This document shows positions 5,307-28,468 of a DNA stretch of 64,000 nucleotides, in pieces (the first letter of the stretch is position 1; each line of letters opens with the position of its first letter). The position numbers and the translations under genes were made by a program. The notes beneath the pieces are model-generated. The model searched no databases. It was given only the letters and a program-made list of their open reading frames with translations, and was not told the DNA's origin. The DNA is taken from sequence record NC_019929.1. One strand, given 5' to 3'.

Positions 5307-5347
5307 AGGGACAGGGGCTAACGCCTCTGTCCCTTCTCTCTTTTTTT
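5307..5347 (+). terminator. Intrinsic terminator after chmA
   Basis: AGGGACAGGGGC-TAAC-GCCTCTGTCCCT followed by a T-run. Confidence 0.8.
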
Positions 5348-21141: not shown

Positions 21142-22848
21142 ATGGTCGAGATTCACATGACTTACACGAGTATGGGGGTCAGGGTAGAAGTCCCCAACCG
21201 ACAGATGGAGTCGGCTATACTCGCGTGGGCCGAAGAGAATATGCACGCCCCCAAGATGGGCAAGCAACAAGGACGTATCACTACCGAAAGGGGGGATGCG
21301 TTTTATGTACACATTCCTTCCCTGCGCACATTTATCTTTCACCGTATGTTTGCTGACCGTATTCAGGCGCTGATCCAACGGGCGTCTTTAGAATACGGTG
21401 TTCGTTACAACCTGTATCAGCATCAGGTTGAACGCAGCGAGCCGTACCGTTGTACGTTTGACAATCCCGGCTTTGCCATGATGGAAACTGACGAGTCTTC
21501 TCGTTTCTTCTACCAGAACGAAGTTGTGGATGCTGCTTGCCAGCCAGATCGCCAACAAACCATCTTTGCCATTCAGACTGGTCGCGGAAAAACCAAAACC
21601 TGTATGAAAGTCATGGTAAAGAAAGGGGTACGCACACTGCTGATTCACCGACCCACGTATGTGTCCAAGTGGCTGTTTGACACCACAGAAGACCCTACAG
21701 GGCTGCGTGAAGATAAGGAAGGGGTATGGGTGGTGACGGGCGTACAGGCCGTCTACGAGGTGCTGGAGATGGGAGAAAACGGGGAACTCGACCGCCGGGG
21801 GATTAAGATTATTATTATCCCGACTGTGACCCTGCAACGCTTCCTGAAAGAGTACATCAACACCGCGGCAACTAACCCCGTGAACCTTGACCGGTTCTAC
21901 GACACGTTGGGCGTCGGTCTGTTGGCCATGGATGAAGTGCATGAGCATTTCCATCTGGTTTATCAGGCAGGGATTATGTTGAATCCCCCACCGAGTGTGG
22001 AGATGTCAGCCACACTGAAACCGGGTGCCAGCAAAGCGTTTATTGCTGAGCGGTATCTGGAACGTTTCCCGCCGGATTTGCGTATCTCGATCCCGGTCAT
22101 TCCCGTGGTGCATATCCGTGCACTGTATTACGCCATTGAAGATCGTAAGTTTGCGTTCTGGGCCGGGAAGATGACCCCGTACAACCACAAACTGTTCGAA
22201 GGGAAACTCATTAAAGAGAATCTCCACATCAGTTATGCGGAAATGTACTGGGACATGATTGAGAAAACCTACCTGAAAGAGTATCAGGTGGGGCAGAAAA
22301 TCTTGTGTATCTTTGCGACAGTGGCGATGTGCGAATTCTTCACAGAGTTTGTGAAGGACAAGCTTGCACAATCAGAGCAGTTCCATGCACTGATGGTGTC
22401 GAAGTTTAATGCGGGCGATTCGTATGACGACTTCATCTTAGCAGACATCTCTATCTCCACACCGGGGAAAGCAGGTACTGCGGTTGATAAGCCGGGGTTG
22501 GTACACATGTACATCTCGACCCCGGTTGAAGACCAACAGCTCAACGAGCAGATGGCCGGTCGTCCACGTAAAATCATGCACAAGGATTGGGGCGAAATCG
22601 ATCCGAAGGTGTGGTTGTTCCATTCGCACAACATACCGAAGCATTGCAACTATCTGAACTCGCGCCAGAAGTCACTGACCGATGTCGTGTTGTCCTTTAA
22701 GATTGCAACGTCTCCGTACGTCGTAAGGAAATCCAATGCTCACTCCGCCGCTTCCGCCCGCGCCAATGCCGCCTTATGTCGGGCTGACCTTAGCAAGTTT
22801 ACTCGAAACCGCTTTAAAAGCGTATCCCGGCGTAGAAGACGTCGCTAA
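21142..22848 (+). CDS. SF2 DExH helicase (phiKZ gp75-like)
   Basis: QTGRGKT (Walker A), DEVH, MSAT and QMAGRPR. Confidence 0.9.
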   Translation: MVEIHMTYTSMGVRVEVPNRQMESAILAWAEENMHAPKMGKQQGRITTERGDAFYVHIPSLRTFIFHRMFADRIQALIQRASLEYGVRYNLYQHQVERSEPYRCTFDNPGFAMMETDESSRFFYQNEVVDAACQPDRQQTIFAIQTGRGKTKTCMKVMVKKGVRTLLIHRPTYVSKWLFDTTEDPTGLREDKEGVWVVTGVQAVYEVLEMGENGELDRRGIKIIIIPTVTLQRFLKEYINTAATNPVNLDRFYDTLGVGLLAMDEVHEHFHLVYQAGIMLNPPPSVEMSATLKPGASKAFIAERYLERFPPDLRISIPVIPVVHIRALYYAIEDRKFAFWAGKMTPYNHKLFEGKLIKENLHISYAEMYWDMIEKTYLKEYQVGQKILCIFATVAMCEFFTEFVKDKLAQSEQFHALMVSKFNAGDSYDDFILADISISTPGKAGTAVDKPGLVHMYISTPVEDQQLNEQMAGRPRKIMHKDWGEIDPKVWLFHSHNIPKHCNYLNSRQKSLTDVVLSFKIATSPYVVRKSNAHSAASARANAALCRADLSKFTRNRFKSVSRRRRRR

Positions 22849-23119
22849 GGCGCTATGTACTGACCCTGTGTTGTCGCCTGCCTTCCATTACTACATGGTG
22901 GATGAGCACTTCGCAGGGATAATGATTCTCCAACGGGGCCTCACCTACTACGTTACGCGTAACTCCAGCATCCGTACGACAGCGTCGTACGAGCAGTACA
23001 GTTATGTGTTGTGGAATGAGAACCCCGCGGGGAACGTTGACCAAAACCCGAAGATGGCATACCGGCTGTTCTCGGAAAAATGGCACGATTGGGTCACTGT
23101 ACCGCACAATGCCAGTTAA
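22736..23119 (+). CDS. Hypothetical protein overlapping the helicase 3' end
   Basis: ATG at 22736 with AAGGA RBS; 113-nt overlap with the helicase. Confidence 0.55.
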   Translation: MLTPPLPPAPMPPYVGLTLASLLETALKAYPGVEDVAKALCTDPVLSPAFHYYMVDEHFAGIMILQRGLTYYVTRNSSIRTTASYEQYSYVLWNENPAGNVDQNPKMAYRLFSEKWHDWVTVPHNAS

Positions 23120-23178: not shown

Positions 23179-23766
23179 ATGAGTCGTGCCAAAAAGTCCA
23201 ACGGTTTTAACCCTCGCCAGAACGCGCGTGACTATATCCGCAACGCGATGCAGGGTATTCTCAGCATCAGTCTGATGTTTGAAGAAGAAACCAAAATCCT
23301 GTCACAGAAAATCGACCGTGAGCGTGAAGTGTCATCCACCATCGGTTACGAACCCCTGCGTATCTTTACGCTGGAAAAACTGGATGAAGCCCAGGCCGGT
23401 TTCATCGGGTTAATGAAAGAAGGCAAAGAGAAACTCGATGCCCTGAACATTGAAGCTGACGCCACGGCGGTCGAGCTGCAAACCCTGGTGAACGAGAATC
23501 GCTGGGACACCATTAAAGACACCTATCCGGCGATGGAAATGGCCCTGGCTGCACACGCCACAGATGCCCACATCATCGGCCAACAGATTCAAGGTGCGGC
23601 CATTGAGATCCTGTCTCTGTATAATGGCCGTGTCAACTTCGTGAAGCAAGCTCTGAAAAGAGATATCGACTGGGACGTAGCACTGAAGATGCTGGCAGAA
23701 GCCGAAGCAGATCAGGCGAAGCCGGTTGAAGAAGCTGAAACCGTTGAGGAAGCTGCACATGTCTGA
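23179..23766 (+). CDS. Hypothetical helical protein (195 aa)
   Basis: ATG at 23179 after TAAGGA; the track start at 23080 is probably too early. Confidence 0.7.
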   Translation: MSRAKKSNGFNPRQNARDYIRNAMQGILSISLMFEEETKILSQKIDREREVSSTIGYEPLRIFTLEKLDEAQAGFIGLMKEGKEKLDALNIEADATAVELQTLVNENRWDTIKDTYPAMEMALAAHATDAHIIGQQIQGAAIEILSLYNGRVNFVKQALKRDIDWDVALKMLAEAEADQAKPVEEAETVEEAAHV

Positions 23767-25819
23767 ACCGTTAGATCAGCGCCCGTCCAACGTGCGCCGT
23801 CCCAATCTTAACCAGCCTGAGGTGTCGCAAGACACCCAGGAACTGGTGCTGCCACCGGCTGCGCAAATCCAGACCATGGATAGCGAAGACGCGGTGATGT
23901 TGATTAAGAAATCCAACCCTGGTTTTTCTTTTGCCCGTGCTGAGCAAGTGTACAACGAACACTACCCCGTTCAGCCGCTGCAAGTCGAAGAACCGGTGCT
24001 GCAACGCCCGGTGTATCAGCAGGAAGAACCCCCTGCCCCACCGGTTGCTCCTACGGTAGCGCCGGAAACACCAAAGGTGCCGGAGGAAACCGCCCACGTT
24101 ACCCAGCCCGCTGGCCCGGACACAACGATCTTCGTTGAGCCAAAACCAGAGCCGAAGGTAACGCATCAGCATGTGCACCAATCTGCGCCTGTGCAGAAAG
24201 AAACGACAGTGGACGATAAACCGTTCACTCCGGCTTCACCTGAAAAACAGGTACAGCACGCTGACCACGAAAAGAACGCTGCGCCGCAGGTGCGTCCGGG
24301 CGACAGCGAACGTCAGGTGAACTTTGGTAAAGGTGTGTATCAGCCCGAAACGGCTGAGCTGCCCGAAGACGACCGTGATGCGGTACTGACCGGCCTGCGT
24401 CGTTTGGTCGGCCCGATGCAAGACCCGAACTTAATCGGGAAAGACTTGCAGCGTTTCTTCTCCAGTGTGAAACGTTCCCCGGAAGACGGCCGTCTGTTGT
24501 TTGAAAGCGAAGAACAGCAAAACCGCTACGGTCTTATCTACGCGGCGCTGAACATGACCCCACCGACACTGCACAGTGGCGTGCAGGCGTTTGACCAGGC
24601 GTTAGAGCGTGCAGATACCCCGTGGGAACAGCGTGTACTGCTGCCGGGCTTTGATAAGCCTGCGGGTCTCATCTCCCCACGCAACAACATGCACACTGGC
24701 CCGATTGCTGCCCTGCGCCGTCGTCGCAAGACCGGTATTCCTAACTCGGTCTGGTTACCGGCTACCGGTATCTACGTCGGCTTCAAAGCACCGAACGAAC
24801 GTGAGTTCTGTGATTTCGATATGCAGCTGACGCTGGAAACGGCCACCATCGGGATGCAGACGTACGGCCTGATGCTGTCGTCCTCGTCCGGTGTCTATAT
24901 CCGCCACATGGTTGAGTTCGCCCTGCAATTCGTTACCGAGTGTACGCTCGACTGCGAAGGCAACGACATGAAGACCGTGCTGCTGGATAAGATTGACCTG
25001 GCTGACTACTGGCTGGTTATTCTGGGCCCAATCCAGGCGAAGTTCCCGGCCGGGTTACCATGGACACTGATTTGTGGTCGTGACGGTTGCGAACACGAAG
25101 AAAGTGTGAAGCTGAACATCGCCCGTTGTATCCGTATGGGTACCGGTCTGTACACCGACCTGCAACGTAACCTGTGGGCGCATCAGCGTGGTACCGATGA
25201 CTTCCTGATCAGTCAGGCAGAACAAGCGGAGTTCGTAAACAACCACCTGAAAGACCCGGCTGCTGTCTTTGAAAAAGATGGCGTGACCGTGACCTTCGGT
25301 CGTTGTTCTATCGGCGAGTTCTTCGACCACACCGAAAGCTGGATGGCGGACATCAATGCCTCAACCACCACGGCATTGTCGGCCAACGGTACGGAGCGTG
25401 AGAAAGAGAACCATATGCGCCTCACCGCAGAGACCCGTCGTCTGACCCGTTATGCCCACATGGTGGAATCTATCTCCGTGGTGGAAGAACAGGAAGTTGA
25501 CGGTGAGCTCGTGCAGACCACGCAGACGGAACGTGACTACAAGAAGATTGTCGTGATGCTCGAAGAGTTATCACCTGACCGTCTGTATGTCAGTCAGTTC
25601 GAAGAAGCGATGGCGCTGTATAATGAGCGCTCACGTCTGGCCGTCTTCGGCTACATGGGACAGAAATGTTCTGTGTGCGGTGGCGACCATGACGGTGAGA
25701 AAGAAGGTCTGTACCGTGGTATCGTTACCATTTCTCCGGACAGGGTTTTTTTCGAGCTCTCTCGAGTGGTGTCCGAGATTCAGAAGTTTCTGCTCAGACA
25801 ATACGGCGTTACTGGCTAG
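23759..25819 (+). CDS. T4 gp26-like baseplate hub/tail assembly protein with long disordered P/E/Q-rich N-terminus (phiKZ gp77-like)
   Basis: 686 aa from ATG 23759 (GAGGA RBS). GFKAPNERE, ICGRDGCEHEESVKLNI and KCSVCG Cys pairs resemble gp26-type hub proteins. Confidence 0.5.
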   Translation: MSEPLDQRPSNVRRPNLNQPEVSQDTQELVLPPAAQIQTMDSEDAVMLIKKSNPGFSFARAEQVYNEHYPVQPLQVEEPVLQRPVYQQEEPPAPPVAPTVAPETPKVPEETAHVTQPAGPDTTIFVEPKPEPKVTHQHVHQSAPVQKETTVDDKPFTPASPEKQVQHADHEKNAAPQVRPGDSERQVNFGKGVYQPETAELPEDDRDAVLTGLRRLVGPMQDPNLIGKDLQRFFSSVKRSPEDGRLLFESEEQQNRYGLIYAALNMTPPTLHSGVQAFDQALERADTPWEQRVLLPGFDKPAGLISPRNNMHTGPIAALRRRRKTGIPNSVWLPATGIYVGFKAPNEREFCDFDMQLTLETATIGMQTYGLMLSSSSGVYIRHMVEFALQFVTECTLDCEGNDMKTVLLDKIDLADYWLVILGPIQAKFPAGLPWTLICGRDGCEHEESVKLNIARCIRMGTGLYTDLQRNLWAHQRGTDDFLISQAEQAEFVNNHLKDPAAVFEKDGVTVTFGRCSIGEFFDHTESWMADINASTTTALSANGTEREKENHMRLTAETRRLTRYAHMVESISVVEEQEVDGELVQTTQTERDYKKIVVMLEELSPDRLYVSQFEEAMALYNERSRLAVFGYMGQKCSVCGGDHDGEKEGLYRGIVTISPDRVFFELSRVVSEIQKFLLRQYGVTG

Positions 25820-26241
25820 ACCACGACGAAGTACCATCCGACCAGATAATCACGACCCTCAAGTTGGATACCACCTCACTGTTCAAGCAGCGTAGTACCC
25901 GACCGATTACGTATCAGGAAGCCCACAACGAGTTGATGGAAGCTTACGATGCAACACTCGGCCTGGATACAGGTGAGAACCATATCGGGTTGTCAGAGTT
26001 TGAGAACCCGGTAACCGGTAGTCTGTACGAAATCTGGTATGCCACGTACCTGCGTGAGCAAATTGGTGAACACTTTCGTCTTTCGTTCGATGAGTTCTTA
26101 GACCGTCCTCGCTGGCAAATTATGATCATGCTGGAGGCGGTCAGGCGTCGCATGGCTATCCTCAACAAGGATATTCAGGCACAGCTTGAAGAGAACAAAG
26201 AGATGCGCGAATTGGAGAAAGAAAACAAGGGTCGTTCTTAA
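25753..26241 (+). CDS. -1 frame extension of the upstream gene (T4 gp51 / tail chaperone T-like segment)
   Basis: Frame is open from 25699 with no ATG or GTG until 25936 and no RBS before TTG 25864. Slippery T TTT TTC at 25747-25753; motif LSFDEFLDRPRWQIMIML. Confidence 0.6.
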   Translation, partial: RALSSGVRDSEVSAQTIRRYWLDHDEVPSDQIITTLKLDTTSLFKQRSTRPITYQEAHNELMEAYDATLGLDTGENHIGLSEFENPVTGSLYEIWYATYLREQIGEHFRLSFDEFLDRPRWQIMIMLEAVRRRMAILNKDIQAQLEENKEMRELEKENKGRS

Positions 26242-26310: not shown

Positions 26311-27174
26311 ATGATTGACATTTATACCGACTACGCGGCCGTACTGACGGTCAATCGCCATGAAGACCGTGCAGCGCCGATGCTAGACTTAGTGACCCTC
26401 GGTATCGATTACGGTTATGATGTGGCTTTAAGCGACGTGTATTTTGAACCGTCTTCTGACCCGGCGGATGAGACCATCCGGTTAGAAGGTATTATCGTGA
26501 AGTGTGCAGTCGCGCTCGGCAACCGCCTGGGCGTCGCCCTTAATCCACAAATCGTGTATCATAAACCCAAAGAGACCGTGCGTATCTTACACGGACTGCT
26601 GGAAAAGTTTGAAGACTTCGACGACAGCGATAGCCTGTACGGCATCGTGATGTCTGGCGAAACCCCTGAGCACATTCTTGAGAACATGTGCCGTGTTGTG
26701 TACGGTGACAACAACCTGCACTTCGAAGACCTCGTTATTTCAGTCGGCCCACGGGTGATGACCGTGATGCGTAACTACCTGGCGGCAGCAGCGCTGGAAG
26801 AACAGAAGGGTGACAACGATTACCTGCGTATCGGCCGTATCGCGGCGTATCTGCGTACCTTCCCCCAAAACCCGTCAGCGTTTGTGTTCCTGAACCTGCC
26901 GCAAGAACCGGACATGCTTGTGGTACAACAAGCGTTGTCGTTTGCGGACGACGAGTACAGCGACGATGAGTTACTGTTAATGTACGCGGTCGGGTTATCC
27001 GTGATTCCGTTCGATGACTTTGACGGGGCCTACGGTGCGTTGGCCGGGAACCTAGAAAAGATTAACACCGACAACTACCCTCCTCTGCCGATTCTGGAAC
27101 AGGGGTTGGCTGCCCTGAAAACCATCTACGGGCAAGACCGTGCGCAAGAGGAAGAGAATTATGAACAGGATTGA
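26311..27174 (+). CDS. Virion structural protein (phiKZ gp79-like)
   Basis: Likely ATG at 26311 (MIDIYTD); precedes the vRNAP subunit as in phiKZ. Function by synteny. Confidence 0.55.
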   Translation: MIDIYTDYAAVLTVNRHEDRAAPMLDLVTLGIDYGYDVALSDVYFEPSSDPADETIRLEGIIVKCAVALGNRLGVALNPQIVYHKPKETVRILHGLLEKFEDFDDSDSLYGIVMSGETPEHILENMCRVVYGDNNLHFEDLVISVGPRVMTVMRNYLAAAALEEQKGDNDYLRIGRIAAYLRTFPQNPSAFVFLNLPQEPDMLVVQQALSFADDEYSDDELLLMYAVGLSVIPFDDFDGAYGALAGNLEKINTDNYPPLPILEQGLAALKTIYGQDRAQEEENYEQD

Positions 27175-28468
27175 ATACCTGGTCGCAGCCTGTCACGCAG
27201 AAGCGTGGCGTCGACTGGTATGGCGTATTGCGGTGTTTAACGTGGCCATCTTTAATGAGGATGGGGAACCGCCTGAACCGTACGACCTGACTTACATTGA
27301 CGGCCTGCCGCATTTCTGGGATGTGCCGGTCGAAGATGAAGATGCGAAGTGGGTGCCGATTGAAGGGTGTAAAAAGGATGACGAACTGTTCATCCCGGAA
27401 GAACTCTTTGAGTTGCGTCCTGATATGTATCCCGGCTTAGAAGGCCCGGTGCAAACCTCCGTAGGGCGTTACGTCTTTAACTGGATTGTTATCTTCTACG
27501 CGTTCGGTACTCGCCTGCCGTACCAGGCGATTTCCAAGAACCCGCTGGAATACCAGAAAGAGATGTACCGCCGTTGTCTGGAACACGAAGACGATGAGCC
27601 AGAGAATGACGGGGCCATTCGTCCAAGCATGATAGGGCGCTTTGTAGGCGGTCTACACGAGCTTGCACCGATGACCCGTGGCATTGCCGCCACCGGCACG
27701 TTGCGTTCGCTGACGACCCACCCAGACGCGTATAAGGTACGTGACGCATTACTGCTTAAGCACAAAGACGAGCTGGATAACCCGGCCGTCATCGTGATGA
27801 TTGAAAAGGCATTGGATGAACTGGATAAGGAATGGTTGAGCGGTGACCAGTCTATCGAGTTCTACAATTCGCCGAAATCCCGAATGCGTCGTCGTAAACT
27901 GATGTTGATGTACGGTATTCAAACCGCATTTAAAGAGGGGAGTGACTTTACCCTGGTGCCAACCAGCCTGATGGAAGTTGATGAAGGCGGGATGAAGAAC
28001 CTGGTAGAGAAATTCAACGACACCCGTGAAGGGTCGTTCTCGCGTGGTGCGGAAACCGCGAAGGGGGGTGAGCAGGTACGTATCATTCAGATGATCTTCC
28101 AGAACCACCGTATCGTGGCCGGGGATTGTGGTACCAAGCTGACCCATCCGGTGGTCATTAACCTCGGCAACGTCACCCGTTATATCGGGATGAACGCCGT
28201 TGTAAACGGCAAACTGGTACAGCTGACTGAGGCGTATTTGAAAGAACAGCTGGGCAAAGTTGTCCGTCTGCGACGCCCCATCTTATGTCAACTGGGTCAC
28301 GTAGACTGCTGTGCTGCGTGCTCCTCGGCCCACAAAGCCGAAGAACCGCGTGCAATCGCCGCGGACATCTCCTCTGCGTTCTCCAACGTTATGACCAATG
28401 CGATGGGCGCAATGCACGGCCGTGAAACCGTCGTGCAGGAATTCGTACCGTTAATCCACATTACTTAA
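27161..28468 (+). CDS. Virion RNA polymerase beta' subunit fragment (phiKZ gp80-like)
   Basis: REGSFSRGAETAKGG, GDCGT, LRRPILC...CCAAC zinc site and GAMHG; ATG at 27161. Confidence 0.85.
   Translation: MNRIEYLVAACHAEAWRRLVWRIAVFNVAIFNEDGEPPEPYDLTYIDGLPHFWDVPVEDEDAKWVPIEGCKKDDELFIPEELFELRPDMYPGLEGPVQTSVGRYVFNWIVIFYAFGTRLPYQAISKNPLEYQKEMYRRCLEHEDDEPENDGAIRPSMIGRFVGGLHELAPMTRGIAATGTLRSLTTHPDAYKVRDALLLKHKDELDNPAVIVMIEKALDELDKEWLSGDQSIEFYNSPKSRMRRRKLMLMYGIQTAFKEGSDFTLVPTSLMEVDEGGMKNLVEKFNDTREGSFSRGAETAKGGEQVRIIQMIFQNHRIVAGDCGTKLTHPVVINLGNVTRYIGMNAVVNGKLVQLTEAYLKEQLGKVVRLRRPILCQLGHVDCCAACSSAHKAEEPRAIAADISSAFSNVMTNAMGAMHGRETVVQEFVPLIHIT

Follow-up and report, generated by a model that had tools for sequence, protein, structure and literature searches.

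A probable ancient programmed −1 frameshift in core gene cg18 of nucleus-forming phages

Introduction

The Erwinia phage phiEaH2 (JX316028, genus Erskinevirus) is the source of the 64,000-nucleotide stretch of DNA analyzed here (from record NC_019929.1, designated as the window; 100% identity over the region), in which a gene for a 686-residue protein overlaps a small open reading frame (ORF) lying in the −1 frame. The upstream protein is, by homology, fold, and synteny, the product of the Chimalliviridae core gene cg18, the phiKZ gp77 family. We propose that the two frames are probably joined by an ancient programmed −1 shift, most likely ribosomal, on a T-run near the 3′ end of cg18, giving a short and a long isoform. 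The slippery signal, the frame relation, the coding signature of the extension, and the conservation of all of them were observed in the genomes compared, and we infer that the shift is ribosomal, not transcriptional.

The recoding logic and the motif class are already known, while recoding of a core gene that is ancient and family-wide among nucleus-forming phages appears to be undescribed. None of the approximately two dozen records that we examined, out of more than 60 related ones, carries a slippage annotation. A search of the open-access literature, outside which most subscription journals lie, gave nothing on frameshifting in phiKZ-like phages, phiKZ gp77, or SPN3US gp39/gp40, in agreement with the initial annotation of the window, which was made from the letters alone and knew of no description in chimalliviruses. 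That annotation had suggested a probable −1 recoding event into the downstream ORF, and the suggestion is now supported by evidence that is both stronger and phylogenetically wider.

If correct, our reading changes the annotation of a core gene, including that of the model phages phiKZ, PhiPA3, RAY, and SPN3US, to one gene with two isoforms, and small hypothetical genes (PHIKZ076.4, PhiPA3 gp073, and SPN3US gp40) would join the core gene set. It would also provide a deeply conserved case of phage recoding beyond the tail-chaperone and capsid examples, with a simple signal that informs the minimum required for programmed shifting. Furthermore, a predicted product of approximately 90 kDa is offered for proteomics, ribosome profiling, and cryo-electron microscopy to seek, as a lead to a function in the hub or in assembly.

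A slippery run in the overlap of the two frames in phiEaH2

The elements of the two-frame gene are as follows.

23759..26241, + strand: two-frame gene, in our reading cg18 (phiKZ gp77 family) with its −1-frame extension
23759..25819, + strand: 0-frame ORF of 686 amino acids with an ATG start and a TAG stop (AFQ96767.1; phrog_8054 and phrog_4585)
25699..26241, + strand: −1-frame stop-free stretch of 180 codons, followed by a TAA stop
25699..25819, + strand: overlap zone in which both frames are open, holding the run of seven T and a C
25820..25863, + strand: −1-frame stretch past the 0-frame stop and ahead of any possible start codon
26240..26273, + strand: intrinsic terminator (GC hairpin and T-tract) directly 3′ of the −1-frame stop

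Within the overlap zone, seven T residues and a C stand in the X_XXY_YYZ phase and form the heptamer U_UUU_UUC (25747-25753), which spans two Phe codons, the second being the 22nd codon before the 0-frame stop. The −1 frame opens directly after a TGA, at 25699, and contains no stop up to 26241; 162 of its codons follow the slippery site. By arithmetic, the 0-frame product has 686 amino acids and the predicted shifted product has approximately 827 (665 + 162). An alternative upstream start of the 0-frame ORF is possible at TTG 23726. The first start candidates in the −1 frame are TTG 25864, TTG 25933, and ATG 25936, and none of them is preceded by a Shine-Dalgarno match. Databases annotate just the distal 102–136 codons of the −1-frame stretch as a separate small gene (AFQ96768.1 in phiEaH2; phrog_7580). 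These results bear out the initial annotation with respect to the position and phase of a heptamer T TTT TTC located 22 codons before the stop of a 686-residue gene, the stop-free −1 frame running from the TGA to 26241, the absence of an ATG or GTG before 25936 and of a ribosome-binding site before TTG 25864, and predicted products of 686 and about 827 residues.

The 64-kb window contains 11 runs of at least seven T, ten of which are T-tracts of intrinsic terminators behind GC hairpins; the single one inside a long ORF is the slippery run. Among the 75 Phe-Phe pairs encoded by the long ORFs of the window, TTT-TTC is used for 5, as against 42 for TTC-TTC. Because it is the only run of this length within a long ORF, because TTT-TTC is rare, and because the run is invariant in the relatives described below, the slippery run is unlikely to be there by chance. 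No terminator lies between the two ORFs and one follows the −1-frame stop, indicating that both ORFs are on one transcript. The ten terminator-like T-runs are located at window positions 5341, 7582, 16357, 21122, 26267, 29023, 44696, 48497, 57646, and 57660; they form a dense + strand set between genes, and several of the sites carry a GGGGCTTCGGCCCC-like stem.

Conservation and coding signature in SPN3US-like phages

Close relatives of phiEaH2 by DNA identity in this region are Stratton (99.2%) and Asesino (83.7%), while SPN3US-like phages of Salmonella, Escherichia, and Proteus are approximately 73–79% identical. Nucleus formation by Asesino has been confirmed experimentally (PMC11724907). 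We compared the junction in 15 GenBank genomes from the genera Erskinevirus, Seoulvirus, Machinavirus, Wellingtonvirus, and Derbicusvirus, in four metagenomic contigs whose upstream protein is 36–43% identical, and in 17 IMG/VR loci, which are in part duplicates of the GenBank genomes. Entropies and stop counts were calculated from 19 genomes (the 15 GenBank genomes and the four contigs).

The run of seven T followed by C is identical in every SPN3US-like genome of this set. The distance from the run to the 0-frame stop is constant in all junctions, and the −1 frame is open through to the stop of the small ORF in each of them, so that the heptamer and the open −1 frame of the initial annotation are both conserved in all SPN3US-like relatives examined. 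Entropy is zero at all eight motif positions, including three 0-frame third (synonymous) positions, versus an average of 1.31 bits at third positions upstream. In each genome, the 50 codons preceding the run contain one to five −1-frame stops, and the 150 codons that follow contain none. Only 12 nucleotides separate the opening of the −1 frame from the run in Machina and pEa_SNUABM_6, which leaves little room for another shift site and pins the site. The run is also the sole conserved slippery motif within the overlap zone.

The nucleotide entropies, given per codon position, show where each frame is under constraint.

Upstream of the run: 0.86 / 0.73 / 1.31 bits at 0-frame positions 1/2/3
Overlap, first half: 0.15 / 0.49 / 0.63 bits at 0-frame positions 1/2/3 (constraint shared with the −1 frame)
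Past the 0-frame stop, before most candidate starts: 0.79 / 0.48 / 1.31 bits at −1-frame positions 1/2/3

The peak of variability thus lies at third positions of the 0 frame upstream of the run and at those of the −1 frame once the 0-frame stop has been passed. Every position class is less variable in the first half of the overlap than in the upstream region, a pattern compatible with two coding constraints and perhaps an additional RNA element. When the −1-frame translation was used as a tblastn query, the alignments began at residue 1, right past the run, in 62 records, down to 50% identity. The stretch 25820..25863, which precedes every candidate start in phiEaH2, is conserved as protein down to approximately 50% identity, with nucleotide variability peaking at −1-frame third positions. 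The in-frame ATG, GTG, and TTG candidates of the small ORF are scattered from +36 to +231 nucleotides in the SPN3US-like genomes, are of mixed types, and lack Shine-Dalgarno matches. The annotated start differs in nearly every genome, and in one metagenomic contig the gene caller placed no gene at the small ORF.

Several deposited sequences depart from this pattern. The record of Enterobacteria phage SEGD1 (KU726251; locus L018, 596-2983) alone annotates a single coding sequence of 795 amino acids that spans both ORFs. Its T-run is as long as that of all relatives, and the two frames are joined by a short aberrant stretch slightly upstream, which is unlike the otherwise near-identical SPN3US in both sequence and length and occurs only in SEGD1. 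Owing to the unaltered run length and the uniqueness of the merging stretch to this record, we rejected SEGD1 as evidence for a natural fusion; the merge is probably a record-specific sequence or assembly problem, the other possibility being a real variant that makes the long form only. A 312-residue metagenomic protein (P0005) was also rejected as a natural fusion: its gene call passes from the upstream protein into the −1 frame by way of an indel that lies well before the run, its end is garbled, and it comes from a low-quality contig. The records of Salmonella phages SPFM6, 7, 8, 10, 12, 14, and 20 contain shuffled or fragmentary pieces of the region (P0003, P0082-P0085, and P0103-P0107), with P0003 containing short tiles of the −1-frame protein in reversed order, which suggests that these deposits are locally misassembled here.

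We also considered whether the split of the two frames could be an artefact, i.e., a homopolymer miscall, or the decay of a gene broken by a true frameshift mutation. Homopolymers are indeed prone to error, and P0005 and SEGD1 show the frames merged in other ways. However, run length and geometry are the same in the 19 genomes and the 17 IMG/VR loci, many of which come from different submitters, the −1-frame translation is retained from its first residue in the 62 records, both frames are under purifying selection, and the arrangement persists among genera whose proteins share 20–25% identity. The comparative data effectively rule out this explanation, to which we assign a negligible probability.

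The same arrangement across Chimalliviridae

In the core-genome table of the family, cg18 is listed as Goslar gp081, phiKZ gp077, and RAY gp267 and named "hypothetical protein" (PMC10299810 supplement). Our tblastn matches to the upstream protein include PHIKZ077, PhiPA3 gp074, and RAY gp267, among others, at 21–25% identity, and its predicted fold matches the homologues of Special G, Eowyn, RSF1, RP12, and PS1 with E values of 1e-17 to 1e-24. The synteny around cg18 is also kept, with the gp75 helicase, gp78, gp79, and the gp80 virion RNA polymerase subunit nearby.

Outside the SPN3US-like clade, nine lineages were compared, and all nine have an annotated small downstream ORF in the −1 frame and a T-run at the homologous Phe-Phe position. 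The lengths of the runs are listed below.

T8: RAY, RSF1, FLC8, LucasX, JM-2012
T7: phiKZ, SA002
T6: PhiPA3
T5: Vibrio phage pVp-JHP1101

In phiKZ, SA002, RAY, RSF1, FLC8, LucasX, and JM-2012, the run forms a U_UUU_UUU heptamer. Across the nine lineages, the −1 frame becomes open at the run or a little ahead of it and remains so for 153–235 codons, and the 0-frame stop follows 13–22 codons past the Phe-Phe pair. The −1 relation of the two ORFs is therefore present in 10 of 10 lineages when the SPN3US-like clade is included, a result expected by chance about once in 59,000 if the lineages were independent, a figure that is overstated given their shared ancestry. The −1 relation would soon be lost from an unconstrained intergenic spacer.

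The −1-frame translations of all lineages are homologous, and between related lineages (phiKZ/PhiPA3 and RAY/SA002) the conservation extends upstream of the annotated starts. In phiKZ, the −1 frame is open for 171 codons, of which PHIKZ076.4 covers just the final 80 (locus L023, 4377-4619). RAY gp266 is annotated with a 136-nucleotide overlap on gp267 (locus L024, 3688-4236). Both annotations look like symptoms of the same unrecognized shift.

Proposed mechanism and competing explanations

We propose that a fraction of host ribosomes would slip back by one base on the U-run of cg18, with the P- and A-site tRNA-Phe re-pairing in the −1 frame on a heptamer of the U_UUU_UUY type. The shifted ribosomes would bypass the 0-frame stop 22 codons on and read approximately 160 further codons. 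The short isoform (686 amino acids) would end with a conserved 22-residue helix, and in the long isoform (approximately 827 amino acids) this helix would be replaced by a linker and a conserved helical domain. Heptamers of the H_HH.U_UU.Y type rank among the most efficient −1 motifs in E. coli, where U_UU.Y is the second-best tetramer, and insertion sequence (IS) elements use U_UU.U_UU.C (PMC4066793). All lineages share the A-site tetramer located at the second Phe codon, and most of them keep the full heptamer.

We looked for stimulatory signals around the run. RNA folding gave no shared stimulator in the nine lineages, no known frameshift element of Rfam was matched, and no upstream Shine-Dalgarno-like element was apparent in the aligned sequences. 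The best local candidate in phiEaH2 is the following.

25760..25784, + strand: candidate weak stem-loop of seven pairs with a bulge, beginning 6 nucleotides past the slippery motif

One pair of this hairpin covaries (AU in 7, UA in 7, UG in 2, GC in 1, and one mismatch). As there is no strong stimulator, the efficiency of shifting is probably low and the long form is probably a minor product, as is the case for lambda GT.

Several observations weigh against a programmed ribosomal shift. The sequence past the run has a weak consensus fold (−2.4 kcal/mol), the hairpin just described, at −4 to −8 kcal/mol, is no better than shuffled sequences, and folding Z-scores range from −1.6 to +0.7 across all clades. 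PhiPA3 (T6) and the Vibrio phage (T5) keep the A-site tetramer and not the full heptamer. The small ORF of pVp-JHP1101 (locus L011, 2848-3342) has a strong GAGGAG-ATG start, and this lineage may have swapped the shift for independent initiation, with the −1 relation persisting. An ATG with a ribosome-binding site for the small ORF, which the initial annotation would have counted against a shift if the slippery site were lacking as well, is found in this Vibrio phage and in none of the SPN3US-like genomes examined. When the −1-frame part was compared by HMMER with 1.84 billion representatives, no natural one-frame fusion was found; the matches were proteins of approximately 70–165 amino acids, save for three oddities (a contig full of errors, a record with shuffled pieces, and a spurious repeat protein). 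Likewise, a word-index search with the upstream part returned only proteins of 530–706 amino acids and no fused form of approximately 830, and a tblastn search with the JM-2012 tail, directed toward remoter fused forms, gave nothing useful. The long product is a predicted protein. Finally, the T8 runs of five lineages are long enough for a possible contribution of slippage by the RNA polymerase.

The last point bears on transcriptional slippage, in which stuttering of the phage or host RNA polymerase at the T-run would produce mRNAs with an altered number of U residues that yield the long form, possibly jointly with ribosomal slippage. Efficient slippage of this kind in bacteria usually takes runs of approximately nine or more, as against T5–T8 here, and the T5–T6 lineages hold the same frame relation. 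The phase of the run always makes a heptamer or an A-site tetramer on the second Phe codon, a phase to which a polymerase would be indifferent. On the other hand, the conserved element is a homopolymer, the RNA stimulator typical of ribosomal shifting is not evident, and transcription in these phages is carried out by their own multisubunit polymerases. A7 and T7 are also under-represented in E. coli genes in all frames, partly on account of polymerase slippage (PMC4066793). Ribosomal slippage is favored because the phase is kept, as expected for tRNA re-pairing, and because T5–T6 is short for stuttering; we therefore regard an origin of the long form in transcription as unlikely.

Alternatively, the two ORFs may be ordinary genes, with the small one translated from a weak or non-canonical start or by re-initiation after the upstream stop, and with the T-run and the −1 relation being by-products of a conserved Phe-Phe motif. 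All examined GenBank records except SEGD1 annotate the region in this manner, the small ORF of the Vibrio phage has its GAGGAG-ATG, and some distant relatives encode a free-standing homologue of approximately 130–146 amino acids that starts with its own Met. The Phe-Phe pair is invariant in the protein, which favors T-rich codons. However, the synonymous sites of the run never vary, despite TTC-TTC being the preferred encoding of Phe-Phe. Neither a start codon nor a ribosome-binding site is conserved for the small ORF, and both protein conservation and the third-position signature begin right past the run, ahead of all candidate starts. In addition, stops in the −1 frame are frequent up to the run and missing past it, and the −1 relation recurs in all ten lineages. 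We consider separate genes very improbable as a general explanation, and in the SPN3US-like clade the small ORF is probably not a separate gene.

The proteins and their possible function

An AlphaFold2 (AF2) model of the 686-residue form has a mean predicted local distance difference test score (pLDDT) of 68. Residues 1 to approximately 230 (window positions 23759-24450) are rich in Pro, Glu, Gln, and Val and are predicted to be disordered, with a short helical segment (residues ~34–68) that is modeled with confidence. Residues ~230–640 form a confident alpha/beta core, and two invariant Cys pairs lie in it or at its edge. The cg18 homologues have 530–706 amino acids; the N-terminal region is the poorly conserved part of the alignment and is thus probably the source of most of the spread in length. 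The last 22 residues, which would be replaced in the long form, are modeled as a helix with pLDDT values in the 60s. The sequence of this C-terminal helix shows 0-frame constraint over the first half of the overlap, which points to a function for the short form as well. The −1-frame part is modeled poorly (pLDDT 51) as mostly helical, with a long C-terminal helix, and the free-standing homologues of distant relatives indicate that it is a real domain able to stand alone.

Scans of both parts against Pfam, NCBIfam, and PHROGs matched unnamed phage families only, sequence searches of the PDB with single sequences and profiles gave no match, and a Foldseek search of the AF2 model against the PDB returned nothing under E=0.4. 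Against BFVD, Foldseek matched the upstream domain to a "T4-like baseplate hub assembly protein" (E=1.3e-3), although marginally, with a target template-modeling (TM) score of 0.49. One cg18 homologue in BFVD is named "Baseplate protein", and the GenBank note on one homologue reads "T4 gp26 like". Short motifs occur in the same order in cg18 and the gp26 family: a Cys pair and N-L, and later CxxCG, basic-Gly, and a near-invariant Phe-Phe near the C-terminus. PF12322, which T4 gp26 itself carries, is not matched by the window protein even at E<=10 and is absent among the families matched by 29 homologues at E<=0.1. In hhalign comparisons, cg18 (alignment A2) reached a probability of 21% over 18 columns against gp26 and 1.6% against the gp26-family profile (15–18 columns overall). 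The initial annotation had proposed a tail or baseplate chaperone: the marginal fold match and the short Cys motifs shared with gp26 may point to the baseplate, and the search for PF12322 does not. Its comparison of the distal, −1-frame part with T4 gp51 found no support, the hhalign probability of this part being 0.3% against gp51 and 0.1% against gp26.

Taken together, the sequences offer a tentative lead, short of family membership, that cg18 may act in assembly in the manner of T4 gp26/gp51, the baseplate-hub chaperones. There is no mention of gp081 in the paper on the Goslar virion structure, and this silence fits, without proving, a non-structural or low-copy role.

A more speculative possibility is that the U-run serves as a regulated switch, the ratio of long to short cg18 changing in the course of infection and timing an assembly step such as baseplate-hub nucleation. 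Two phage-encoded RNA polymerases could differ in stuttering on the run, or phage factors on host ribosomes could alter slippage. If true, such a switch would be a recoding-based developmental timer kept since the origin of nucleus-forming phages, but we consider it improbable.

Neighboring genes

The genes around the two-frame gene are listed below.

21142..22848, + strand: putative ATP-dependent DNA helicase, equivalent to phiKZ gp75 (cg17), from annotation and synteny
23179..23766, + strand: upstream neighbor, hypothetical protein (phrog_8045), in the position of phiKZ gp78 beside gp77, from synteny alone
26311..27174, + strand: downstream neighbor, hypothetical protein (phrog_7807), equivalent to phiKZ gp79 (core gene cg19), from synteny alone
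27161..28468, + strand: virion RNA polymerase beta-type subunit, equivalent to phiKZ gp80, from annotation and synteny

An ORF at 22736-23119 overlaps the 3′ end of the helicase gene in a different frame and is annotated in Stratton, Asesino, and SPN3US, but not in phiEaH2.

Comparison with known systems

T4 gene 26 also gives two isoforms (26/26′), in this case by internal initiation. The gp26 family (PF12322) resembles cg18 in having two Cys pairs and in ending just past a near-invariant Phe-Phe, with the same order of these elements in cg18. However, cg18 is three times longer and shows neither a PF12322 nor a PHROG match to this family, and its −1-frame tail resembles neither gp51 nor gp26.

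In IS elements, a clear hairpin or pseudoknot is usually present, often together with an upstream Shine-Dalgarno-like stimulator. Neither is evident at cg18, which is no transposase. Nevertheless, OrfA-OrfAB of IS3/IS911 and cg18 share the same heptamer class (PMC4066793) and, in our reading, the joining of two overlapping ORFs by a −1 shift.

In 10A/10B of T7/T3, the major and minor capsid proteins, a late gene undergoes a −1 shift on Phe codons close to its end, and the last residues are exchanged for a longer tail; as would be the case for cg18, the two isoforms share nearly the whole protein. The cg18 proteins are of another family and function, and their predicted extension is far longer (approximately 160 residues), forms a conserved domain, and is free-standing in some distant relatives.

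The initial annotation had likened cg18 to the tail-chaperone pairs lambda G/GT and P2 E/E′ while placing it far from any tape-measure gene. The neighbors confirm this location: cg18 does not lie between tail tube and tape-measure genes but is adjoined by the helicase, the gp78 and gp79 equivalents, and the virion RNA polymerase subunit. Its upstream product has 686 amino acids, in contrast to approximately 100–150 in the chaperone pairs, and it has no Pfam, NCBIfam, PHROG, or fold match to tail chaperones. Position, size, and family thus speak against membership in this group, whereas the logic of the shift is held in common: in G/GT and E/E′, as in our reading of cg18, ribosomes shift to the −1 frame on a slippery heptamer close to the 3′ end of a morphogenesis-type gene, and this shift, operating without an obvious strong RNA stimulator, yields a short major form and a C-terminally extended one, and the position of the shift is kept while the sequences diverge.

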